From Oopsacas minuta (lineage: Eukaryota; Animalia; Porifera): DNA of 64,000 bases. The first letter of the stretch is position 1, and each line of letters begins with the position of its first letter. Under the pieces are notes generated by a model, which did not search any database, was not told the DNA's origin, and saw nothing but the letters and a program-made list of their open reading frames with translations. Of the stretch, positions 7,916-21,609 are shown one piece after another. The translations under genes were made by a program, and so were the position numbers. The DNA lies in contig JAKMXF010000222.1 of the NCBI GenBank assembly GCA_024704765.1, positions 62,001-126,000 on the forward strand, written 5' to 3'.

Positions 7916-9597
7916 TCAGAACCAACGTTTCTCATCTGTTCGAGATAATTTAAGTAGAGCGGGACTGACCTCCTGTTTAGAATCTTTCAACACTTTAATT
8001 AAATCTTTAGCTACAGTAGCATCAGCAGGAGTTAGTATAGAATAAGCCATACCCTTTTTCTCTCCACGAGCTGTCCTCCCAATTCGGTGTATATACTGAA
8101 CGATGTGTGTGGGAAAATCTACATTGACTACGTTCTTAATGCCTTGTATGTCTAGACCACGAGAAGCTACGTCAGTAGCCACTAGGAAATCAATATACCC
8201 CTTCCTGAACTGGTCTAGAGAACGCTCACGGTTATCTTGCGATTTAAGTCCGTGTATACTCGCGACTTTAAGCCCGTTTCTACGCATAACATCCATGAGT
8301 TTATCTGCTCTATTTCGTGTATTAGTAAACACTAGTGTCTTGTGATTAGGCTCCTCTAGGATTTTGTTAAACAAATCATCAAGAGTTGCTAAATATACAC
8401 AAATATTATCATAACTATATTATTAATAATAAACTATATAACTTACAATATTGTAAACGACCCTTGGTTACTATTATTTCCTGTTTGATGTTCTCCTTAG
8501 TGCGTAGGTCCTCTGAACCTATGTCTATTTTAATCGGCTTAGAAGTGACGTTTTTCGCAAGATCCCTCACCTCAGAAGGCCAGGTTGCTGTCCATAAAAG
8601 TGTCTGTCTATCTTTTCGCGTTTTATTAACAATATACTGTATCTGTGGATAGAATCCCATACTAAGCATTGTATCAGCTTCATCTATTACACAAAAGCTG
8701 ACCTACAAGAATAATACAAGGTTATAATTTGTTCAATTTATCTGTACAATTCAAGGCTTGGATATAAGGGGAGTTTACTGTTAGAATATAACTTACATTA
8801 CTGAGATCCAAATTTCCATTCTTTATGAAGTCCATTAGTCTCCCTGGTGTTCCAATACACAAATGGAATCCTCTACGGAAATGGACAAACTGGGAATCTT
8901 TACCAGATCCCCCGTAGAAAAGCGCAGTCTCAACATCAAAGAACTTTTTATAGTCCTCAGCAACTTGATTAATCTGTCTAGCCAATTCCCTAACAGGAGC
9001 TACTATTATTCCCATAGGAGCTACTCTATTACTACCAACTATAGTTTGTCTTTGAAATAATTCCTGAGCTTGTAAGTGTGCTAGTGCTGGGAGCATGAAT
9101 CCTAAGGTCTTACCGGATCCTGTCTCTGATATCCCGATTAGATCGTGTCCTGATAATATAACAGGCCAGGATTGACTCTGAATGGGTGTAGGCATTTGGA
9201 ATTTTGAGTACAACTCCAAATTCAGTTCCTCACCGAATTGTAACTCCTTTAAGTGTTTAATCGGTTTGGGGACGTGACTGGGTACCAGAATTCTACCATT
9301 CTTACGTATTTCTTCCACTGCTTCGTCAGTGCGCTTTTTCGTAGTTTCATTTTCTATGTAAATGTCCTTTCGAAACGGTTTTAACACTTTTTCTTTTTCT
9401 TTTACTTGATGTTCACTTGACAATTCTTTGAGGAAATCATTCATATATTCTTTCTTCATTCTCCCACGTGATCGGGTTGACCAACTATCTCTATAACCAG
9501 AGGGGTTCGCATCGAAACTGAACCCTCTCTCATTAGAGTACACTACCCGTGGTACGAGTCTGTACATACTCAATGTATTGTGTAGTATTCTCCTCAT
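7916..9597 (-). CDS. DEAD-box RNA helicase, DDX5/17/43 (Dbp2)-like; exons 9597-8797, 8702-8447, 8388-7916
   Basis: Q motif PTPIQSQSWP, Walker A ETGSGKT, Ia PVRELA, Ib TPGRL, II VIDEAD (formed after splicing), III TAT, V VATDVASRGLD, VI HRIGRTAR. Confidence 0.92.
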
Positions 9598-9924: not shown

Positions 9925-10779
9925 ATGGCGAAAATACCTAACATTGAACATTTAAAGCCGATACTCAAAAGCAATAAAAATACAGAATCTCTCGCAGGGC
10001 CTAGAGGGATAATCCAGGATTATGAATCTGAACTTATCTATATCGCAGATGCAGGAAGTGATGTTATTCGCGTTTTCACGCCTTCTCTAGAACCAGTGCT
10101 AAAATTCGGTGATAGCAAAATACTATCCACCCCAGCTGGTGTATGTATTGTAAACGGTGTCCTATTTGTGTGTAACTGGGGGCTACACACAGTAGCGATA
10201 TTCTCCTTAGATGGAGAGGAGATAACTCAAATGAAAGAGGTCACAACTTCTAATGGTTTATCACGGTTTACACAACCAATAGGAATAACTTATGACAAAC
10301 ATAAAGATGAGGTATATATCTGTGATTACGGGGGTAATATGGTGAAGAGATTCAATGACGTACAACACATATTCGCAATGATAAATAAACCATTTGATGT
10401 GAAGCTTACAGATGAGTTTGTAATAATTGTGACTGGAGAGACTGTATGTCTACATTTTTACAATAAAGAAGGGGATATGATTAAATCAATAGTGTCAAGC
10501 AATCAAGGAAATGAATCAGATATTGGGAATCCGTCCTTCTTTGGAATAGACGACAAGAATACAATCTGGCTATCTGATTATAGAAGACATTGTATATGCC
10601 AGATTAGCATGGATGGGAAAATATTAAGGAGAATTGGAGGAAAAAAACCGTCAAGAGGTAATACCGAATTATTCTCGTATCCAACTGGATTGCTACTGGA
10701 GAAGAATGGGTGCTTGATTAGTGCGTGTGTGAGAACCGATGACCAGATACAGTTATTCGATATTAAACATTTCCGTTAA
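9925..10779 (+). CDS. NHL-repeat beta-propeller protein, intronless, 284 aa, head-to-head with the DEAD-box gene
   Basis: Repeated P-GI/V...IYIAD/VYICD units (GPRGI..IYIAD; TPAGV..LFVCN; QPIGI..VYICD; KPFDV; NPSFFGI..IWLSD; YPTGL). No RING or B-box. Confidence 0.85.
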   Translation: MAKIPNIEHLKPILKSNKNTESLAGPRGIIQDYESELIYIADAGSDVIRVFTPSLEPVLKFGDSKILSTPAGVCIVNGVLFVCNWGLHTVAIFSLDGEEITQMKEVTTSNGLSRFTQPIGITYDKHKDEVYICDYGGNMVKRFNDVQHIFAMINKPFDVKLTDEFVIIVTGETVCLHFYNKEGDMIKSIVSSNQGNESDIGNPSFFGIDDKNTIWLSDYRRHCICQISMDGKILRRIGGKKPSRGNTELFSYPTGLLLEKNGCLISACVRTDDQIQLFDIKHFR

Positions 10780-10923: not shown

Positions 10924-13401
10924 ATGTGTATTGATTGTTGGAAAGAAAAGTCTCTTGATCGTGTAAGCAACTAAATATGTTATCCATAGTCTAAATGAGT
11001 TATAGTGTATTATATTTTAGGGGACTATTTGTAATGATACAGGTGCTTATATGCTGAACTTTTCTGGCTGCAAACAGTGTGGGAGTTATGGGTTCCCGAA
11101 GGAAGGGAATAAGGTAATAGCAGAGGACGGCGCTGGAGATGAAACAGTGGAATATGAACGTCAGTTAATGTTTGAATATATCTATTGTGTATCTAGACTA
11201 GTTATTCTGTGAGTAGCATACACATAATCAAATGTTGAGATTGAAACTTTGGCTAATAGATAATTTGGCAATTTTGTTATTGTAACATTTCACCGATCTC
11301 AACCAATACACACTACCATTTATTTTCGTCTAATACGTTCTAGCATCAAATTCTAATATCCACTGAAATAAAGTGTCCCCCTCGGCAACTTCATGGCAGT
11401 CATTTGAATAGTCTAAATATGAAGAAATTAATCCCACCACCCAGATCTCAATTGCAACTGAATCAAGTCTATCATTAACGTGGCCTAAGCTGTAATCACT
11501 TAGCGGCTATATTATCTCGAATAATGCTGAATAATGTGCGTATACATTTGTATACTAAATAATATTCTAACATATGCAGTCAACCTAAATGAGTGGGAGA
11601 ATAACCTACCGACAGTGGGCAAGTGTTAGGGACTAATATTCTTAGTTCGTAATCGAACTTACTCTGAAACTACCAAATGAATAAGTACATTATAGATACT
11701 TCTTACCCTAAGTTTTATTATGAATTGTGTCCTCATTAGCCTTACATACAGTCTAAAATTCCTAGTTCAATTAACCATTGTTGCTTGTAGAAATTTTAAG
11801 CAATATGAACAGTACTAATGTGAATATTTATGTCACTTTTTCAAACTGCAATCCACTAATATATTCATTGCCAAACGAATTAATACGCTACGCAAGAGAT
11901 TGATTGATTATTAGCAGAGGGTATATAGATTAATTTACAAATTAGAATTACCAATTATGACTTCAATGTAGTTTGAGTGGGCAATTAATCACTAATAATA
12001 CATTAATTACTGTTATTTGCAGATATATGTGTGAATTGTGGACACTCAATCGCTAAGCATCATTATTCGTTTTCAGTGGATGAAGCTGAAGGATATCAGG
12101 TACAATTCTTACTCAGGAAATTACTTAACTAACAGTTGCATACGTACCACATTTCTATATTGAGGGAGGCGTTATATGTCTTGAATATTAGTGTACACCC
12201 TAGATAGTAATGGGAGGCCTGTATACACCTGGATAACCCGATACTTGGAACATCTGGACTCTTGTGATCCCTAAACAGGAATTAATATTAATAGTATGTC
12301 CGTACCTTATGCATTTATGAATAATTACTTTCAAAAAAGATTAAGTTTGAGAGTTCACCAAAATGCATTTCAACTATTTTAATACTAAATATGTATAATT
12401 CCATCTTCTGATTAACAGGAAACAATTCAATTAAAATTAATACTTGTTATCTTATAAAAATCATATAAAAACAGTTGTTATATGGTTATATCTTATGATC
12501 AGCCGTCATAATAATATTTCTAAGTACAGCATATCGTAATTATAACAATTTACATTAGTAGTCTACTGCTAGTTACAACCTACAAATTAAACCCACGCTA
12601 GCAGTGCTAGTATGATAGAATTTGGATGTGTACACTTTCTTATCATAATGTTATAGACAAAGCCAGAGGCGTATTTGAAGGGAGCTCCAGGGGCACCATG
12701 GAGCCCCCAGTCGGTGCGCCACTGAACCTCGTCGGAGGAAAAAATCAGAAGTGAGGTAAAAAGAAAGGGCTATTTTTCTCCATCTTATTTGTTGTTGTTG
12801 TTTAAAAGATATGATTATATTCAATTTTTTGATGTAGTGACTTTACGGAATTAGTAGTATATATAATATCTAATTAGTAGTAGAAAATATACAAGATGTC
12901 AACAAAAAGACACGCCAGTGACAGACATGTGTCATGAATGCGACTTATGTTAAGGAATAACAACATATATTTTGACTACTTTAGATTAAAAAACTTGATT
13001 TTGTAAACTTTAGCTTATATTCTTTATTATCATTAGTTAAGTCGGAGAAATTTACGGAAAAACTCGTCGGAGCTGAAGTTGTGGAGCCCCCTCTTTTGTT
13101 TGGGGGCCCTACGCCCTGGACAAAGCATAGTAGTGGTGAATTGTCACGGAAATATCTATAAAGGGGGGTGGAAAGCCTGCCCTATGCTCTTATGACACCC
13201 CTCTAGTACTTCCCTAAAGTTATTACAGAGGGTATAGAGCACAAGTTATAAGAACATATTTTATACTCCCAAGTGTGTTCTCATAAGCGATAATCACTGT
13301 ATTCCATTTAGGATTTTGAGATGAATTGTATGCTCTGTGGATTTGGACAAGACAGGAGTAGTATTCTGCCCAATGATCCATCCAAAGATTACCTGTACTA
13401 A
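10924..13401 (+). CDS. CHURC1: Churchill zinc-binding protein, 114 aa; exons 10924-10962, 11021-11159, 12023-12099, 13312-13401 (not in the ORF track)
   Basis: Spliced product MCIDCWKEKSLDR|GTICNDTGAYMLNFSGCKQC..DETVEYEH|ICVNCGHSIAKHHYSF..GYQ|DFEMNCMLCGFGQDRSSILPNDPSK matches the Churchill Cys/His pattern. All introns are GT-AG with compatible phases. Confidence 0.92.
12664..13118. mobile_element. Non-autonomous hAT-type element (455 bp) in Churchill intron 3
   Basis: Perfect 8-bp TSD GACAAAGC at 12656-12663 and 13119-13126; termini CAGAGGCGTA / TACGCCCTG; GC-rich subterminal GAGCCCCC and CTCGTCGGAG repeats; no ORF. Confidence 0.85.
13226..13299. mobile_element. MITE family C (TA-CAG..TATAAGAACA / TGTTCTTATA..CTG-TA), degenerate copy
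   Basis: TA-flanked; shares ATAAGAACAT and ATACTCCCAAG-GTGTTCT core with 26953-27091 and 30640-30707. Confidence 0.6.
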
Positions 13402-14521
13402 TTCTCAATGTATATACGTATATAATAATCCAGTTATGTATGTATTGTGTGGATATGTGCACAATTATTATGTTTAGTCTCTGTAAACCAATTTACAGTG
13501 AAAAGTTGGAATTGTGCTAGTCTTCTTCTGGTTACTTAGATACGCAACAAATATACAAGTGTTCAGCTAATTAATAGTGAGGTGTTGTGTTTCCTAGCCA
13601 CTAGACTTTTTGGAATACTATATTAGTCTAAATACGACAAGAAGTAATTATCCAATGAATATTTAGAGGAAGGGTAACATGCATTACGGATAAGTATTGC
13701 GAATAACAAAGTCTGCGTAATTGCTATTTAATTATTAAACATGATATGATAAAAAATTAATTTCTTCTAATAGTATCATTCTCTGATCTAGGATAGAATT
13801 ACAAAATTGGATTATTTCATAGTTACCACACCAATCAATTGTAATGTTTCTATCCCGATAATATGGCTATAAGTGTCTCTTGACAACAATATATTTCAAA
13901 TTAAGCTTCAGACTAATTACAGCCCAATCGTGGACCAAGGTTAGTCGTTATTAGCATATTCTGCAATAAACTGCAGAACTCTTTGTCATAAAGTTCGATT
14001 ATTCATTCAGTTTTTGTGATTATCAGTTTCTATGTAAATTGCAGCGAAATTCGTATGAATTTAAAAGGAGCTCAGGAAATCTGACTGATCTGTTCTACAC
14101 AGAGATTATAATGAATACTGGATTGAACAGAAGTGGAAAGTATTAAATTCATAATACAAGCAGGTATGTTAGAACATAGAATTATAGAAGACCGCATCTA
14201 ATAGTAGAAGAAATACTATACTATCATTACTATGGACGTATAAAGGCCAGAATCTATATATTAAGTAAGTTTACTCCGGACAAGAGTTATTCGACAGAAA
14301 ATACACAAAATATCTGAATAACTTTGAAAATATTTTAACACAAGTCAAAGGACTAGCAACTCGTTCATCCTTACAAATCTTGAAATCAACAAAAGTAAGT
14401 GATAGAAACTACAACGCTACGAACATGGTGCAGATCAGAATAATATTAAATTCTTACATAAATGTAAAACGCTTTTCCTAGTTATTAGTAATGAATAAAA
14501 GCATATTATTTGCAGGGTAAG

Positions 14522-17500
14522 ATGTCTAGCATTCAAGCACCGATTCAAAATCAGCTGACTGGGGTAGGGATGTCTTCCAACCAAAGGTAAGTATTCGATA
14601 CGTTCAATGATTAATCTTAAGATATTATCACAATTGTAAAATACGTATTTTGCCTACTCTGCTCTAATAGCATTGTTCTAAGAGAATTCTACGTACTTGT
14701 AATTAATACAAGAGGATTATCACTTTAATTATTCACTGGAACACAATTATTAGAGTATTTTCTTTCAAGTGATTTCATTTAGCCTATCCGAACAATTAGA
14801 GCTGACCAGAAGTTATAATTGTGTCATCTTTAAGATACGAGATAGATTATGATAATATATTTTACTTGTATCTTCACAAATAATACATAATTCCTAAAAT
14901 GCATTATGAGCCTTATTAGTAATTATTAAATTGTAAAATAAATATGAATTGATATCGTAAGGCAAATCATACATAATTGCGATTTGTTACTTAAAACTTC
15001 TATCTTTATGATTATTTAATTATCTTAATTATAATTGTGGCTGGTGTGTTATTGATGGTTACTTAATGCGCATAATTCCACCGAAATATATCTGTAAATC
15101 AAATTTTCATGGACTACTGTCAATAGAGACTTAATATATTTGTAGTATAATGGATGAGTTTAATAATATTTGGAATATTCCAAGGGGGTTATTTAGTAGA
15201 GTAATGTAACCACTGGAAATGTAGTTAATATGAAACTAAAGATACAAGGGCATGCACAAGCCAGGTAGAAAGCAGCTGAAGGGAGGGCTTAGAGATAGAT
15301 AGTCATCGTCATGGTTTGAGTAGAATTCAGAATATTATTTTCACAATGAGCCCCTACTATGATAATTATCTAATTTAAGTAACACATTAGATAAAGTATG
15401 TATGCTTTCAGTATAAAATAAATTCAAGACAACCCTCTGTGAATTAGTTCAAATAGCATGTAGCAATGCAATATTTGCGATAATGAGGTATTAGATTTAT
15501 TATCGCCTATTCTTATAGTTTAAATTACTGTAATCAAAAATCAAAATGCGGGAATATGGATGTTCCACAGTGTGGTTCGAACAACATGCTAGCAAAATGT
15601 GAGATGTGTGACAAGAGTTACGACCAGCAGGGCCTGACGTCATGTCCAGAATGTGAGCTAATCTACTGCATGGGTTGTTGTCAGGATATTCACTCAAAGG
15701 GTAAATTAACTTGTCATACAATCTTCCAATACATGTGCAATATATGTAATGAACTCCCCGGAGGATATGACTGTTTTGATTGTGGACTATCCTTCTGTGA
15801 AGTCTGCTCTACCAAGAGACACTCCCGAGGAGCGTTCACCAGACACACACTAGCTATCAGACAAAGTCACTTAGCTGTAAATGTCTTTAAAACGTCAATG
15901 CATTCAATGGACACGCCATGCACCAATAATAATAACAACAACAACCCGATTACATCAGTAGCATCTATGAAGTCTAATTCGATGCATAATTTCGCGCATA
16001 ACCTAGATAGTGAGGAGTACATGCCTATGTCAAAGAAACAGAGACTCTACGACCCTAATTCGAACGATTATAGCACAATTGTTAACTCGCCGTGTCCAAA
16101 GAACCTAGAAACATGGACACTACTGAACTCCAATGGAATTATGAGTCCAGGACCTTCCAACATAGTACAGCATGGTAACTCAATTATTAACAACTATATG
16201 CCGCCAATGAATGGACAGGTGAGGGATATGTTTTATGAATTATATTGTTTGTAGATAACTAAAATAGAGTGTAATTTGTGAGTTAGATTTTCATCCAAAC
16301 TATAGATTAATAGATAATAACCAAGAACTATTTCTTAACTAAATCTACATAAAGCCCTCTCAATTAGCTATTAATACACATGATGTATCCGTAATAATTA
16401 TTTGTGAATAATAGCTTACCAGACAAATAGATCTCCTGATTGTTTTGGTTAGTAAATTAAAATATATAAGATTACAGCTACAAACTTCCACCAATAAAAA
16501 TGAGTAGGTAGTGTAGAATGTTATGGTCAGACGGATTTCCCAAGTACAACTGTAAATTAAAATGGTAGCGTTTTTATTGGACTATTTTGGTAAACAAAAA
16601 GTGGTTACAAGTAGTTGCGGGGTATTCATATTGTGGCGTATTTTGGTCCAACTATGTATGTGAAAAAATCTAACTAGAAATTAGTATAATATTAACAACA
16701 CCCTTAAAATGAACCTGTCCACATGTGCCAGATTTTCACATAATTTGTCAGTTTCCATTGAAATATATTATAGAAGTAATATGCAAGGAACTTTATAGCG
16801 GAGAATACAGTGCTCTGCCTAAACAATGGCAAACTCAATACCTATTCGAAAGTTAATAAGTGAACTGAAGTACAGTTTGAACTGGCTTGCTGTATTGTAG
16901 TATTGTCAGTTGAACCAGTGTTTAAAGGTATAAATGTGTATTTGTAGATTCGTAACCAGCAGCTACTCAATGCTATGTCGATGCCAGCTTCGATGCTCCA
17001 CCAGTCATCTCAGCTAGGCGAGCATTCACACGGAAACGCGGTTGATCACACTTTACAAGACAGTATAGCAAGTTCTCACGCCCTGAGTGCGCTTGTTAAC
17101 GAGTTCGACCCTGTAGACCACGTAGGAGAGAGTCACTGCGAACTTCCAAACGATGGATTCGGAGTTCCATCTCCACCACACGCAGATGTAGGTATAAATC
17201 CAAACTTATTAATGCTACATAGAAATGGTAACTTCCCTTCTGTTAGCCCGAAAAAGAATCTCGACGAGACAGAACAGCTGAGCTCAGAATTCAAGAACGA
17301 AACGTTAGGCAATGCAGACGCCAGCTGTTTTATAACCAACATCAGTCATGACCAAGTAGTGAATAAAAAGCCTTCATTAGGTAGTCCAATACGCTCTCCC
17401 ACCAGTACAACTGACGTAGGGAAAATATCGAATGGTAAAAAATTGGTTTCTGGTGATAATGTAGCTGAGAAGTTTGATTTATCGTTTTTAAATGAAAAAC

Positions 17501-17883
17501 CAAAAAAAAAACGACGAATTTTTAACCCAGACGAAAAGAGTCGATTGACACATTTCGCAGAATCACTTAACTGGACATGGCAAGCGAGGGAAGTTGAGGA
17601 GTTCGCAAGAGACAACGATTTCACAGTGCAACAAGTAAAAGATTTCATCTATAACCGAAAGCGCAACATGAAACACAGCATCCCAGACCTGACAAAGTCA
17701 CAAACTAAGGCCGACAACTTACAGAGCCTTTCTATGGGAATGTCACCACCACATTGTGCAATCGATCAAGCACTTGAGTCGATAACTCAATGCTCGTATC
17801 TCAGCTCTCCAGATAGCAACCACGAAACACTACCAATGTCAGACTGTGTATTTCTACTCGACACATCTATCACTGCAGATTAA
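14522..17883 (+). CDS. Double B-box + atypical homeodomain protein, ~566 aa; exons 14522-14586, 15519-16218, 16948-17883
   Basis: Two Cx2C-x8/11-Cx2C-x4-Cx2C-x4-H-x7-H B-boxes (15598-15846). Homeodomain-like KKKRRIFNPDEKSRLTHFAESLNW...VKDFIYNRKR (17497-17673). Splices AG|GTAAGT..TTATAG|T (phase 2) and CAG|GTGAGG..TTGTAG|ATT (phase 0) keep the frame. Confidence 0.8.
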
Positions 17884-18588
17884 CGAACCCTCCTCACCCA
17901 TAATCCCACTTATTAGATAGCCAAAAAAGAAATCAAAACACCAATAAACAAGGCAGAAAATCTTAATAATAACAATTAGAATAGAATTAGGAAATAACGT
18001 TAACTCTACTGTACATTATTAACTATTGATTGCAAACCGCAATTATACAAATAATACAATGTATTTTGATTTCCTGTAGCCATGATCTTCTGATATTCTC
18101 ACTTGTGTATAGGATGTGTGAGGTATTAGTGGGCAAGTATATGTGTATAATGTGTTGTATTATTTTGATTAAACCTCTTTAACAAAACCTTACTTTATAC
18201 TACTGGACTATCGTATAACGGGAGTCGAGTCTATTGCTTAATCTAAACTGCTGTAACGACAGAATATATAGTATTAATTTTATATAGTTCAATTCGTTAC
18301 AATGAAAGTGGAATTGAGCTAATACTGATCTGCCATGTACTCGATTCTCTAGTTAATTTTCACATAGAGAAAGTATTAGTCTAAAAAGTATTGTAAGTTA
18401 CAAGAAGTAGATCGTAATAATGCAAGAATTGAATGGAAAATATTAAGATTCAAACAATTAATTGATCTCTTACATCTCATGATGGAAAACATAGCCAAAA
18501 TCTGTATTTTCTTAACTTCTTATCGCTTAGGGATCTTCTCTTCCATTTCCTCAGCAATCAGCTGTTCCTCTCAAAGAATATTCTCTAT

Positions 18589-21500
18589 TCAATCTTTTTT
18601 AATCGCCATCCACTTGTAAAAAAACTCTGACACGCTCATCCACGCAACACCTGCCTCGCCAGCTGTTTCCAACACAGGTGCAAATTGGTGGTAAGTTCTA
18701 CTACCGGGGGCGATGAAATTCTGAATTATACTTTCATCAAAGAGCAAGCAAACTGCTTCGCTGGACATCCTACTCTCAATTTCTGCGTGCTTAAAACCGA
18801 CATCAAATAATTCGCTAATGCAAGCAACTGTAGGATTGCTGAGCTGTCTACGTTTATCTCTACCTGCCGATTTGACCTGGACATTTAGGGCCTGAGGTCT
18901 AACTGTCTGGTCAGAACTCTCAAACTCGTGTTCAATGTATCTAAGTGCCTGCCGAACGTGGAAATTCTTCTTCTGCCCTTTCATTTCGTCTAGTATGCGT
19001 AGAGTTACATTAGCTATTATCAGAGTAAATTTCTTCGAGTTAACTAGTCTCTTCAAAGTGTTCAACTGATTACACAAACTAAGAGCATCAGGGATCAGTA
19101 TAAACGGAAGTAAGTTGTCTTTCAAATGCTGTTGTTGTGCTCTGAGCATATCTACTTGTCCTTTCAGCCTCTGATTAGCCAGAGCTCTCATTAGATTATT
19201 TTGTTTCTCTCTTGCTTGTGTTTGTTCTATCAGTTTTATTTCTTCTGCTAATTTAGCATTTTGTAGTTCTTTCTGTGCAGGGCCTACAAACAGCTGGGTA
19301 AGGGGATCAAACGTGAAGGCAGGAGCCAGCTTGTTAGCAGCCATTAACAGTCCGAATTTCCGTAGATATATTAACCTAGTTAGACACTGCTCCTCTTCAG
19401 GTGTAGAGCTTATGAACATGTTCTTAAGATTACTGAGCTGTTCATCTTGTAGAAATCCATATAATAACTTATCTTCTAATAGAGGATGTGATTGAGACCA
19501 ATCTCTAGCTAGAGAGAAAGAATCAGGAGAAGATTTGTACTCAGGGAATACTCCCTCTTGAATAAACTCACTAGTGCTGGGTAGAAAATTGAGCAGTGCA
19601 GCTAGATGCGACCAGAGTATAGCAGAGCTCTGTGCACATGTAGCTAGTATAACAGGGTTATTGTGTAGCCAGATAGAAAACGCACGTATAGCACAGAGAG
19701 TTGATTCATCTTGTATATCTCTACACAGCTTGGTTAGATTATCAGAAATATACACTGTATTATCTGGCTTTATAGTAGCTGTGGGTATTTCTATATCTTC
19801 CATGGAGAACTTAGCTGCTAAGATTATCTTAGCCGTTTCAATTGGTTCTTCGAATGAAATGGATTCTGTACGAGTTTCTAAAGGTGTTAATTTGGGTGAA
19901 TTCAAGTCAGCTGATTCCAATTCACTGGTGTCCTTCAAATCTTGTGTAGTCATGATACTCTCTGGAGATTCATCACTGACATTATTCAGTACAATTTGAG
20001 TATTATTCTGCGGTTTATCACAGCTCGTATCATCCTCATCACTAGAGTGATCAGTCCCTAATATTTCAAATCCACTACTTGAAGAAGAATCAGATCTAGA
20101 AGACAAGATAGAATCAGATACATTTCCCTCGCTCAGATCATCATCATTATCTCTAGCAATTCTCACTCTCTGCACACGACTAACACGCTTGCTACTACTC
20201 ATTGACCTTTTGTTAATACAAATATCGTTATCAGAATCTGGTCCATATTTGTTGATGTTTTGGGGTAATATAGGCGTTGATGTCTTATGCTCAATATCAT
20301 GAGGGCTTTGAGTAGCATCTGGAGATATGTTATCCACCAAAACTATAGACGAATCATTGTTTAGACGTTCAATTTCCTTGGAGAGAAGTTGAATTGCAGT
20401 CAGACTAAACTGTGGTTCACCTCGCTCTGTAGATAATGGTGAGAGTATTATCTTTCTAACCCGTGTAATACAACATTGTATAATCAATGAAAATATAGCT
20501 ACTGCAAATGAAGTTGCAGCAGGGGTGTGTGTCGAGCCATGTGCACGTAATATGTGTGACGTCAGAATAGAAATAATACATATTTTGAATAGAGGATCGC
20601 CTCCTACAATAGAAGTTAGAATACCTTCGTTATCAAACGAATCCTTGGATGTAGAGCATAACTCATCAATTGCTAAACACTCTTCGAAATCTTTCAACAA
20701 TCTAGAACACATATATTCCATATCTTGACCGTTCTGTTCAGAGCTGTGTAGAGGGGAGAATATTTCCTGTAGTCGTAAAAACCCGTGAATAAACCGTTGT
20801 AACAGCCTCTCATTGTGTTCATACTCACTCGCATTAACACACGGGGGTAATGCATTAACGATATCTAGCTGCATACGATTTTTATCATAAATAACCTTAA
20901 TATTAACCTCGCTTAGTGCGACGATAGAATCTGTACAAGCCAACGCACGCAAATAGAAATAAACCGAATCAAGATTGTAATTAATTCCCGGATACATTCC
21001 CGCTATCTGGTTATAAGCATGTCCAAGTGATGGATTAAGAATAATAGCTTGATAATAATATCGTTTAGTGACGTCATAATTATGAGTAAACACTTGTTGA
21101 TATCGTGAGAGATCACCTAGATGTATTAGACACTTGTAAATATACACTTCATATTGTTTATCAGTATTTTTGCAAATCGTACTATCCTCTTGATAACGAT
21201 TCCAGTCTAGAAAGCTAGCTGTTGTTATATTGTGTGTGTCAGTCATTTTAGCTAGTAAAGATATGTAGAATCCTATTCCAGCAGTGATATGTGTTCTATA
21301 ACCTATTTGTAATGGTGTATCTCCTTGTATTTCTGGTGAATTACGGCATTTTTGTATAAGTCGATAGAAACCAAGATTCCATAAGATATCTTCTATCTTA
21401 TCCAACTGTGGGAAAGTAAATTCGTTAGATAGCAGAGCTCTGGAACATCTATCTTTAAGACGTTTCCGTAGTACGAGCGGTTTTGTTTGAAATAGACTAT

Positions 21501-21609
21501 CATTGGAGGGAGAATTCTTCATATGAATATCTATCTGATTTGCGAGGGCAGAGATTGCTTTGTATCGATGTTGAACACTTGTTTCAATTTTACTGACTGC
21601 CTCTGCCAT
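18589..21609 (-). CDS. SMG5: SMG5 (EST1B) NMD factor, intronless, 1006 aa
   Basis: Est1 TPR/14-3-3-like region (CLIHLGDLSRY, YYYQAI.LNP..GHAYNQ, DSVYFYLRAL), acidic linker, and C-terminal PIN FILIPDALSLCNQL...LDEMK...ALRYIEHEF of SMG5 type. Confidence 0.88.
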   Translation of the reverse strand: MAEAVSKIETSVQHRYKAISALANQIDIHMKNSPSNDSLFQTKPLVLRKRLKDRCSRALLSNEFTFPQLDKIEDILWNLGFYRLIQKCRNSPEIQGDTPLQIGYRTHITAGIGFYISLLAKMTDTHNITTASFLDWNRYQEDSTICKNTDKQYEVYIYKCLIHLGDLSRYQQVFTHNYDVTKRYYYQAIILNPSLGHAYNQIAGMYPGINYNLDSVYFYLRALACTDSIVALSEVNIKVIYDKNRMQLDIVNALPPCVNASEYEHNERLLQRFIHGFLRLQEIFSPLHSSEQNGQDMEYMCSRLLKDFEECLAIDELCSTSKDSFDNEGILTSIVGGDPLFKICIISILTSHILRAHGSTHTPAATSFAVAIFSLIIQCCITRVRKIILSPLSTERGEPQFSLTAIQLLSKEIERLNNDSSIVLVDNISPDATQSPHDIEHKTSTPILPQNINKYGPDSDNDICINKRSMSSSKRVSRVQRVRIARDNDDDLSEGNVSDSILSSRSDSSSSSGFEILGTDHSSDEDDTSCDKPQNNTQIVLNNVSDESPESIMTTQDLKDTSELESADLNSPKLTPLETRTESISFEEPIETAKIILAAKFSMEDIEIPTATIKPDNTVYISDNLTKLCRDIQDESTLCAIRAFSIWLHNNPVILATCAQSSAILWSHLAALLNFLPSTSEFIQEGVFPEYKSSPDSFSLARDWSQSHPLLEDKLLYGFLQDEQLSNLKNMFISSTPEEEQCLTRLIYLRKFGLLMAANKLAPAFTFDPLTQLFVGPAQKELQNAKLAEEIKLIEQTQAREKQNNLMRALANQRLKGQVDMLRAQQQHLKDNLLPFILIPDALSLCNQLNTLKRLVNSKKFTLIIANVTLRILDEMKGQKKNFHVRQALRYIEHEFESSDQTVRPQALNVQVKSAGRDKRRQLSNPTVACISELFDVGFKHAEIESRMSSEAVCLLFDESIIQNFIAPGSRTYHQFAPVLETAGEAGVAWMSVSEFFYKWMAIKKD

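Follow-up and report, generated by a model that had tools for sequence, protein, structure and literature searches.

A spliced gene of the glass sponge Oopsacas minuta joins two B-boxes to a predicted, highly divergent homeodomain

Which class a homeobox gene belongs to depends on the domains found alongside its homeodomain, and to our knowledge the animal classes have been catalogued in full. In plant ZF-HD proteins (PLINC; TIGR01565; structures 1wh5 and 1wh7) an N-terminal zinc-binding module precedes a C-terminal atypical homeodomain, and the animal ZF-class homeobox proteins (ZEB, ZFHX, ZHX, TSHZ) likewise place zinc fingers and a homeodomain in one transcription factor. B-box zinc fingers are found in animal TRIM and B-box-only proteins, and in plant BBX/CONSTANS proteins, which have one or two B-boxes at the N-terminus followed by a C-terminal nuclear or DNA-associated domain. 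The gene compared here with these systems lies in a 64,000-nucleotide stretch of DNA from the glass sponge Oopsacas minuta (GCA_024704765.1, contig JAKMXF010000222.1, positions 62,001 to 126,000 of the forward strand), called the window below, whose positions serve as coordinates throughout. The contig series belongs to whole-genome project JAKMXF000000000 of this sponge (PMC10280926). Like the plant proteins, the product combines an N-terminal zinc-binding module, in this case two tandem B-boxes, with a C-terminal domain that is predicted to fold as an atypical homeodomain.

The gene reads on the forward strand from an ATG at 14522 to a stop codon at 17881-17883 and has four exons in all, a non-coding leader included. 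The coding exons are 14522-14586, 15519-16218 and 16948-17883, and arithmetic from the exon lengths gives a product of 566 residues. The start-codon exon (14516-14586) supplies 21 codons and 2 nucleotides before the donor AAAG/GTAAGT. The two B-boxes are encoded by exon 2 (15519-16218), along with a linker rich in N/S and the conserved motif ETWTLLNSNGIMSPGPSNIVQHGNSIINNYMPP. Exon 3 (16948-17883; 311 codons plus the stop) contributes the homeodomain, the conserved motifs SSHALSALVNEFD and DASCFITNIS, and a further, C-terminal motif. Exon phases are compatible, the first junction (AG/T) forming a serine codon and the second falling in phase 0. Sequencing run X4, made on the sample that also gave the genome runs, behaves like RNA: in its contigs 14587-15518 and 16219-16947 are precisely spliced out at GT..AG joints, and contig depth is ~500-1500 over the exons versus 34-45 over the introns. 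The joints 14586/15519 and 16218/16948 thus place the B-boxes and the homeodomain on a single mRNA, and the gene is expressed. A note made earlier from the sequence alone had proposed one spliced open reading frame with B-boxes and a C-terminal domain. The gene structure is as claimed there, the X4 joints agree with it, and the possibility that the two exons belong to separate transcripts was not borne out.

The C-terminal domain occupies 61 residues (17503-17685), with a basic arm, KKKRR, and helices at about 17527-17565, 17584-17616 and 17626-17673; the peptide quoted in the earlier note maps to 17512-17664. An AlphaFold2 (AF2) model of 17455-17880, made with four orthologues, has three helices (model residues 25-37, 44-54 and 58-73) with predicted local distance difference test (pLDDT) values of 87-90. 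When this model was compared with the PDB by Foldseek, the best 50 rows were all homeodomains (TMt 0.8-0.88). VIA realignment also gave homeodomains in all of its best 50 rows, most at Z 8.3-9.1 and a root-mean-square deviation (rmsd) of 1.1-1.8 Å over 53-63 residues, and its best matches, including engrailed, Pdx1 and Msx1, had Z up to 9.1 and rmsd of 1.1-1.4 Å over 55-58 residues. Searches of the PDB by sequence pointed the same way: homeodomains made up 9 of 9 matches to the single sequence, all in register between the basic arm and helix 3, and 8 of 9 matches to the profile. In structural register, R190 of exon 3 takes position 5, F192 position 8 and N236 position 51, with one residue added in loop 1, and of the homeodomain hallmarks (R5, F8, L16, F20, W48, F49, N51, R53) R5, F8, L16, N51 and an aromatic residue at position 19/20 are present and invariant, whereas positions 48, 49 and 53 are substituted. 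The predicted fold, a three-helix helix-turn-helix with an N-terminal arm superposable on solved homeodomains, thus identifies the domain as a homeodomain, albeit a highly divergent one. A SANT/Myb domain, or no fold at all, was considered and rejected, all best fold matches being homeodomains, and the FIYN that had been read in helix 3 instead of WFQN does fall on positions 48-51. The lone Pfam signal in the domain was a weak match to DUF7645 (E 0.024), and an ESM Atlas feature search with the homeodomain returned no usable match. Further downstream lies the conserved C-terminal motif MSPPHCAIDQALESITQCSYLSSP (17740-17811), for which a short helix is predicted with low confidence.

By sequence, the best-scoring known class in three libraries is ZF-HD, at scores far under the family cut-offs. 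TIGR01565 (homeo_ZF_HD) is the top NCBIfam match (E 0.0012; 18.7 bits against a cut-off of 57.45; profile positions 2-57 of 58). The ZF-HD structures 1wh7 (E 0.03) and 1wh5 (E 0.1) rank first and second in the single-sequence PDB search, and ZF-HD structures rank first and fifth in the profile search. An exhaustive profile search with exon 3, covering 1.84 billion representative proteins, returned one orthologue cluster, one plant ZF-HD protein (P0008) and one low-complexity false match (P0009). The plant protein, Nyssa sinensis KAA8536568.1, is a tandem of two ZF-HD_dimer fingers and two ZF-HD homeodomains; the homeodomains are 36% and 29% identical to the sponge domain over ~64 residues. It is the sole significant match that is neither orthologous nor of low complexity, at an E of 2.3e-5 that sums the two homeodomains of one model, each worth ~20 bits. 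Having two such domains is what made the match significant, and the Nyssa entry could be two adjacent ZF-HD genes joined in one model. Features common to ZF-HD and the sponge domain are F-A-E-x-L-x-W in helix 1, E-x-F in helix 2, and N51 and K53 in helix 3.

Other features set the sponge protein apart from ZF-HD. The ZF-HD_dimer finger (PF04770) has no match in exon 2 or exon 3, the Nyssa protein scoring 4.6e-50 as a positive control, and its place as zinc module is taken by the two B-boxes. Loop 1 has one extra residue in the sponge domain and is three residues shorter than in ZF-HD; all ZF-HD alignments need a three-residue gap, and the long loop 1 that puts the Asn51 equivalent of ZF-HD four residues later than in a 60-residue homeodomain was not found. 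Helix 3 reads FIYNRK, as opposed to WMHNNK, and the host is an animal with animal-type neighbour genes and not a plant. TALE/PBC homeodomains, which like the sponge domain are atypical with an extended loop 1, are the second-best class by sequence and stand among the top fold matches: PBX1 and Extradenticle follow the ZF-HD structures in the single-sequence PDB search (E 0.2-0.9), the class as a whole has E 0.08-0.9, and PBX/TALE lies within 2-3 bits of ZF-HD. The sponge domain, however, has one extra loop residue and not the three-residue insertion of TALE, its alignment to PBX1 needs two single-residue gaps, and it lacks the P-Y-P motif, the PBC domains and the W-F-x-N of helix 3. In view of the weak scores, the closeness of PBX/TALE, the missing ZF-HD finger and the shorter loop 1, the domain is therefore not a member of the ZF-HD class. 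It appears, on sequence comparison, to be an orphan atypical homeodomain for which ZF-HD is the nearest known class. Membership in the Pfam Homeodomain or TALE families was also considered and was rejected, there being no Pfam match. The alignment to plant ZF-HD claimed in the earlier note is thus reproducible and the best-scoring one, but it is marginal and class membership fails; in the sequence libraries TIGR01565 leads, under its cut-off, and PF00046 is silent. As for the animal ZF-class, ZEB, ZFHX, ZHX and TSHZ have C2H2 fingers and typical or multiple homeodomains, unlike the sponge protein, and gave no match in any sequence or structure search made with it.

At the other end of the protein, exon 2 matches PF22586 (ANCHR-like B-box) at 2.9e-9 over two stretches. 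B-box 1 (15598-15717) has the pattern C-x2-C-x11-C-x2-C-x4-C-x2-C-x4-H-x7-H and B-box 2 (15736-15846) the pattern C-x2-C-x8-C-x2-C-x4-C-x2-C-x4-H-x7-H. Scanned alone, box 2 passes both PF22586 (33.2 bits against a cut-off of 27) and PF00643 (24.4 against 24.1), and box 1, which has the complete Cys/His pattern, matches PF22586 at E 4e-4 and 20.8 bits, under the cut-off. Both have a B-box-1-like ligand pattern, in which every ligand position is invariant in an alignment of 3 species. A profile of the pair, compared with the PDB, aligns ungapped over 80 residues with the tandem B-boxes of CONSTANS (7vsq, 7wsj) at E ~0.002 and also matches MID1 B-box 1 at E 0.003; these scores are weak and are biased by cysteine content.

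The zinc-finger type (PF22586, PF00643) is thus that of animal TRIM and B-box-only proteins such as MID1 (B-box 1) and ZFYVE19/ANCHR. However, the sponge protein lacks the RING, the coiled coil and the C-terminal domain of TRIM proteins and has a homeodomain attached, and both of its B-boxes are B-box-1-like, as against the TRIM order of B1 plus B2. Pfam scans of exon 2 and exon 3 found no RING, for which the ~47 residues before B-box 1 are too few, and the linkers, being N/S/P-rich, of low complexity and interrupted by frequent prolines, leave no room for a coiled coil of the TRIM type. These scans gave B-boxes alone, which does not place the protein in the TRIM family. Plant BBX/CONSTANS proteins resemble it in layout, with two tandem N-terminal B-boxes of equal type and spacing, but their fourth B-box ligand is Asp where the sponge protein has Cys, and CONSTANS ends in a CCT domain, for which Pfam gave no match in exon 2 or exon 3, where the sponge protein ends in a homeodomain. 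The two B-boxes, the missing RING and coiled coil, and the likeness to the CONSTANS/BBX tandem, all of which had been noticed by eye, are accordingly upheld, the last of them at a weak score. For both halves of the sponge protein, plant transcription-factor modules are among the best matches, again with weak scores.

Orthologues of the gene turned up in a small clade only. Word-index searches with exon 3 and exon 2, in length windows of 171-544 and 128-408 residues respectively (the full-length product of ~566 residues falls outside both), found orthologues only, in related ENA assemblies. At two of these loci, L001 and L002, the gene order of the window recurs: Churchill, the B-box exon, the homeodomain exon and, on the other strand, SMG5. 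In 11 exon-3 sequences the protein is near-invariant from NVAEKFDLSFLNEKP through the homeodomain to SIPDLTK; SMG5 in the orthologue-bearing assemblies is just 55-66% identical. Compared with L001, which is the most distant locus, the window differs in 44 of 81 domain codons, 37 of the changes being synonymous and 7 replacements. The protein sequence of the homeodomain is therefore under strong purifying selection. Apart from the Nyssa protein and the low-complexity match, no relative outside a small sponge clade was found at E 0.001 among the representative proteins, and the gene is most likely restricted to that clade, as far as sequence searches tell.

These results are best accommodated by a stand-alone expressed gene whose product is a nuclear, sequence-specific transcription factor, which we regard as the probable though by no means certain reading. 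The homeodomain would bind DNA, the basic arm KKKRR entering the minor groove and helix 3, with its conserved Asn51, the major groove, and KKKRR probably doubles as a nuclear localisation signal. The residues at positions 47 and 50, Asp and Tyr, are uncommon there and hint that the target sequence is non-standard. By analogy with TRIM and plant BBX proteins, the two N-terminal B-boxes would form a zinc-dependent module for self-association or partner binding, and the invariant short motifs in the disordered linkers could serve as docking sites for co-regulators. DNA binding, oligomerisation and nuclear function are thus assigned to the protein by its likeness to characterized systems. The likeness to ZF-HD and CONSTANS is itself best read as resemblance, either convergent or left over from old generic features, rather than as a sign that the protein belongs to those families.

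Several observations weigh against this interpretation. The run that supplies the splicing, X4, is not recorded as RNA, no run that is so recorded contains the stretch, and the shorter flank of one X4 splice joint is just 28 letters. The B-box pair was modelled poorly by AF2 (mean pLDDT 62), box 2 coming out as helices. The core of the homeodomain is changed, W48 to F, F49 to I and R53 to K. Asp is unusual at position 47, which faces DNA in canonical homeodomains. Neither Pfam Homeodomain (PF00046) nor Homeobox_KN (PF05920) matches even at E up to 10. Finally, the public annotation (GCA_024704765.1) places one gene of 705 residues here, with Pfam matches to Churchill and to the ANCHR-like B-box.

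The substituted core, the acidic position 47 and the silence of Pfam would also be expected if the domain had a homeodomain-like fold that had lost DNA binding, serving instead as a protein-interaction module in a B-box adaptor or co-regulator. A tight protein interface would likewise account for a surface that hardly varies anywhere, the flanks NVAEKFDLSFLNEKP and MKHSIPDLTK included. However, the residues most closely linked to DNA contact are retained without variation (R5 and the rest of the basic arm, Asn51, K/R at 53-55, and K57), and the model fits DNA-bound homeodomains with an rmsd of 1.1-1.4 Å. The adaptor is therefore considered unlikely, although it survives better than any other alternative to the DNA-binding factor.

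The public 705-residue model, in which the homeodomain is unrecognised, raises another alternative, namely that the real product is a fusion of Churchill, double B-box and homeodomain. A Churchill (CHURC1-like) gene does lie upstream on the same strand (10925-13401), an arrangement kept in L001 and L002, and the leader of the B-box/homeodomain gene is open in frame from 14269 to 14394. However, the Churchill gene is complete in itself, with four exons (10925-10963, 11021-11159, 12023-12099 and 13312-13401) and a product of 114 residues. A stop closes its last exon, which spans profile positions 87-109 of 112, and the C-terminal peptide is kept in L001 and L002, where the comparison was made at the level of the peptide and not of the stop. 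The leader exon (14298-14394, its 5' end approximate) is joined to 14516 in an X4 contig, at whose loose end the last 30 letters equal 14365-14394. The donor at 14394/14395 is AAAA/GTAAGT, and the RNA contig extends at least 97 nucleotides 5' of the junction. The leader frame has a stop at 14266-14268 and no ATG, and frame-breaking indels of -1 and +2 relative to L002 show that the leader is not conserved as coding sequence. The ATG that follows and the N-terminal peptide MSSIQ... are, by contrast, kept in L001 and L002. Just 5' of the leader, ~30-45 nucleotides before the first RNA-covered base, a TATA-like element, TCTATATATT (14253-14262), sits inside a block conserved with L002, GCCAG.ATCTATATATT.AGTAA, and is a candidate core promoter of the B-box/homeodomain gene. 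The O. minuta annotation came from BRAKER/Augustus, run with unstranded reads, and the genome is compact (PMC10280926). Under such conditions a predictor easily joins adjacent genes. An attempt to reconstruct from local exons a set yielding 705 residues found none. The fusion is thus improbable, and Churchill and the B-box/homeodomain gene are very likely separate genes, probably merged by the predictor, with a small probability left for read-through.

Least tenable is class-level homology of the homeodomain, and perhaps of the double B-box too, to plant ZF-HD and CONSTANS-type proteins, by ancient descent or gene transfer: it would explain the top rank of ZF-HD in NCBIfam and the PDB, the lone Nyssa match, the common F-A-E-x-L-x-W and K53 and the ungapped CONSTANS alignment, but with all scores at a weak 16-21 bits per domain, PBX/TALE close behind, a significance summed over two homeodomains of a possibly merged model, no ZF-HD_dimer finger, a shorter loop 1, a different helix 3, and a gene that has GT..AG introns and sits among sponge genes in conserved synteny, it is very improbable. 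That both halves are true class-level homologues of plant modules, a CONSTANS-type double B-box and a ZF-HD-type homeodomain, is less probable still; were it so, modules held to be plant-specific would predate the plant-animal split or have crossed kingdoms, and would survive, among animals, in glass sponges only.

As a stand-alone gene for a probable DNA-binding factor, the locus introduces no new principle: its DNA-binding fold and its zinc finger are both known, and what is undescribed is their lineage-restricted combination. No paper was found that places a B-box beside a homeodomain or homeobox, and neither protein searches nor the literature yielded this architecture outside the small sponge clade, which does not prove its absence elsewhere. 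The earlier suggestion of an undescribed animal architecture stands to that extent, with the reservation that the gene is already covered by public annotation, inside the merged 705-residue model. A double B-box plus homeodomain protein would constitute a further, lineage-restricted homeobox class, very strongly constrained in glass sponges, and is of interest for homeobox classification and for sponge biology. It also provides a concrete case in which likeness to ZF-HD and CONSTANS reflects either convergence or old ancestry, and its homeodomain, with Asp47 and Tyr50, may supply a new DNA-binding specificity for study. The O. minuta genome paper counted 20 homeodomain proteins, no ZF-class gene among them, and the accessible part of its supplements has no mention of Churchill, B-box or JAKMXF010000222.1 (PMC10280926). 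The homeodomain described here is invisible to Pfam-based surveys and hidden by the merged gene model; the published count of 20 therefore probably misses a sponge homeodomain.

The 3' end of the gene is marked by AATAAA at 17943-17948, a candidate polyadenylation signal, and the RNA contig reaches 17952 before running into adapter sequence. Beyond it, on the opposite strand, a single exon (18589-21609) encodes an SMG5 homologue of 1006 residues, whose nearest named relatives are animal SMG5 proteins. Its precomputed Pfam list has EST1 and EST1_DNA_bind without PIN (PF13638), unlike most vertebrate SMG5 proteins among the matches listed. On the 5' side, ~4.7 kb upstream of the B-box gene, a single-exon open reading frame of 284 residues (9925-10779, forward strand) encodes an NHL-repeat beta-propeller (PF01436, 8.9e-13) without a RING, B-box or coiled coil of its own; its presence is curious given the TRIM-NHL proteins, yet the order is wrong for a fusion. 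Still further upstream, on the reverse strand, an open reading frame of 291 residues (8722-9597) with a GSGKT Walker-A motif resembles the N-terminal part of a DEAD-box helicase and is presumably one exon of a larger gene.

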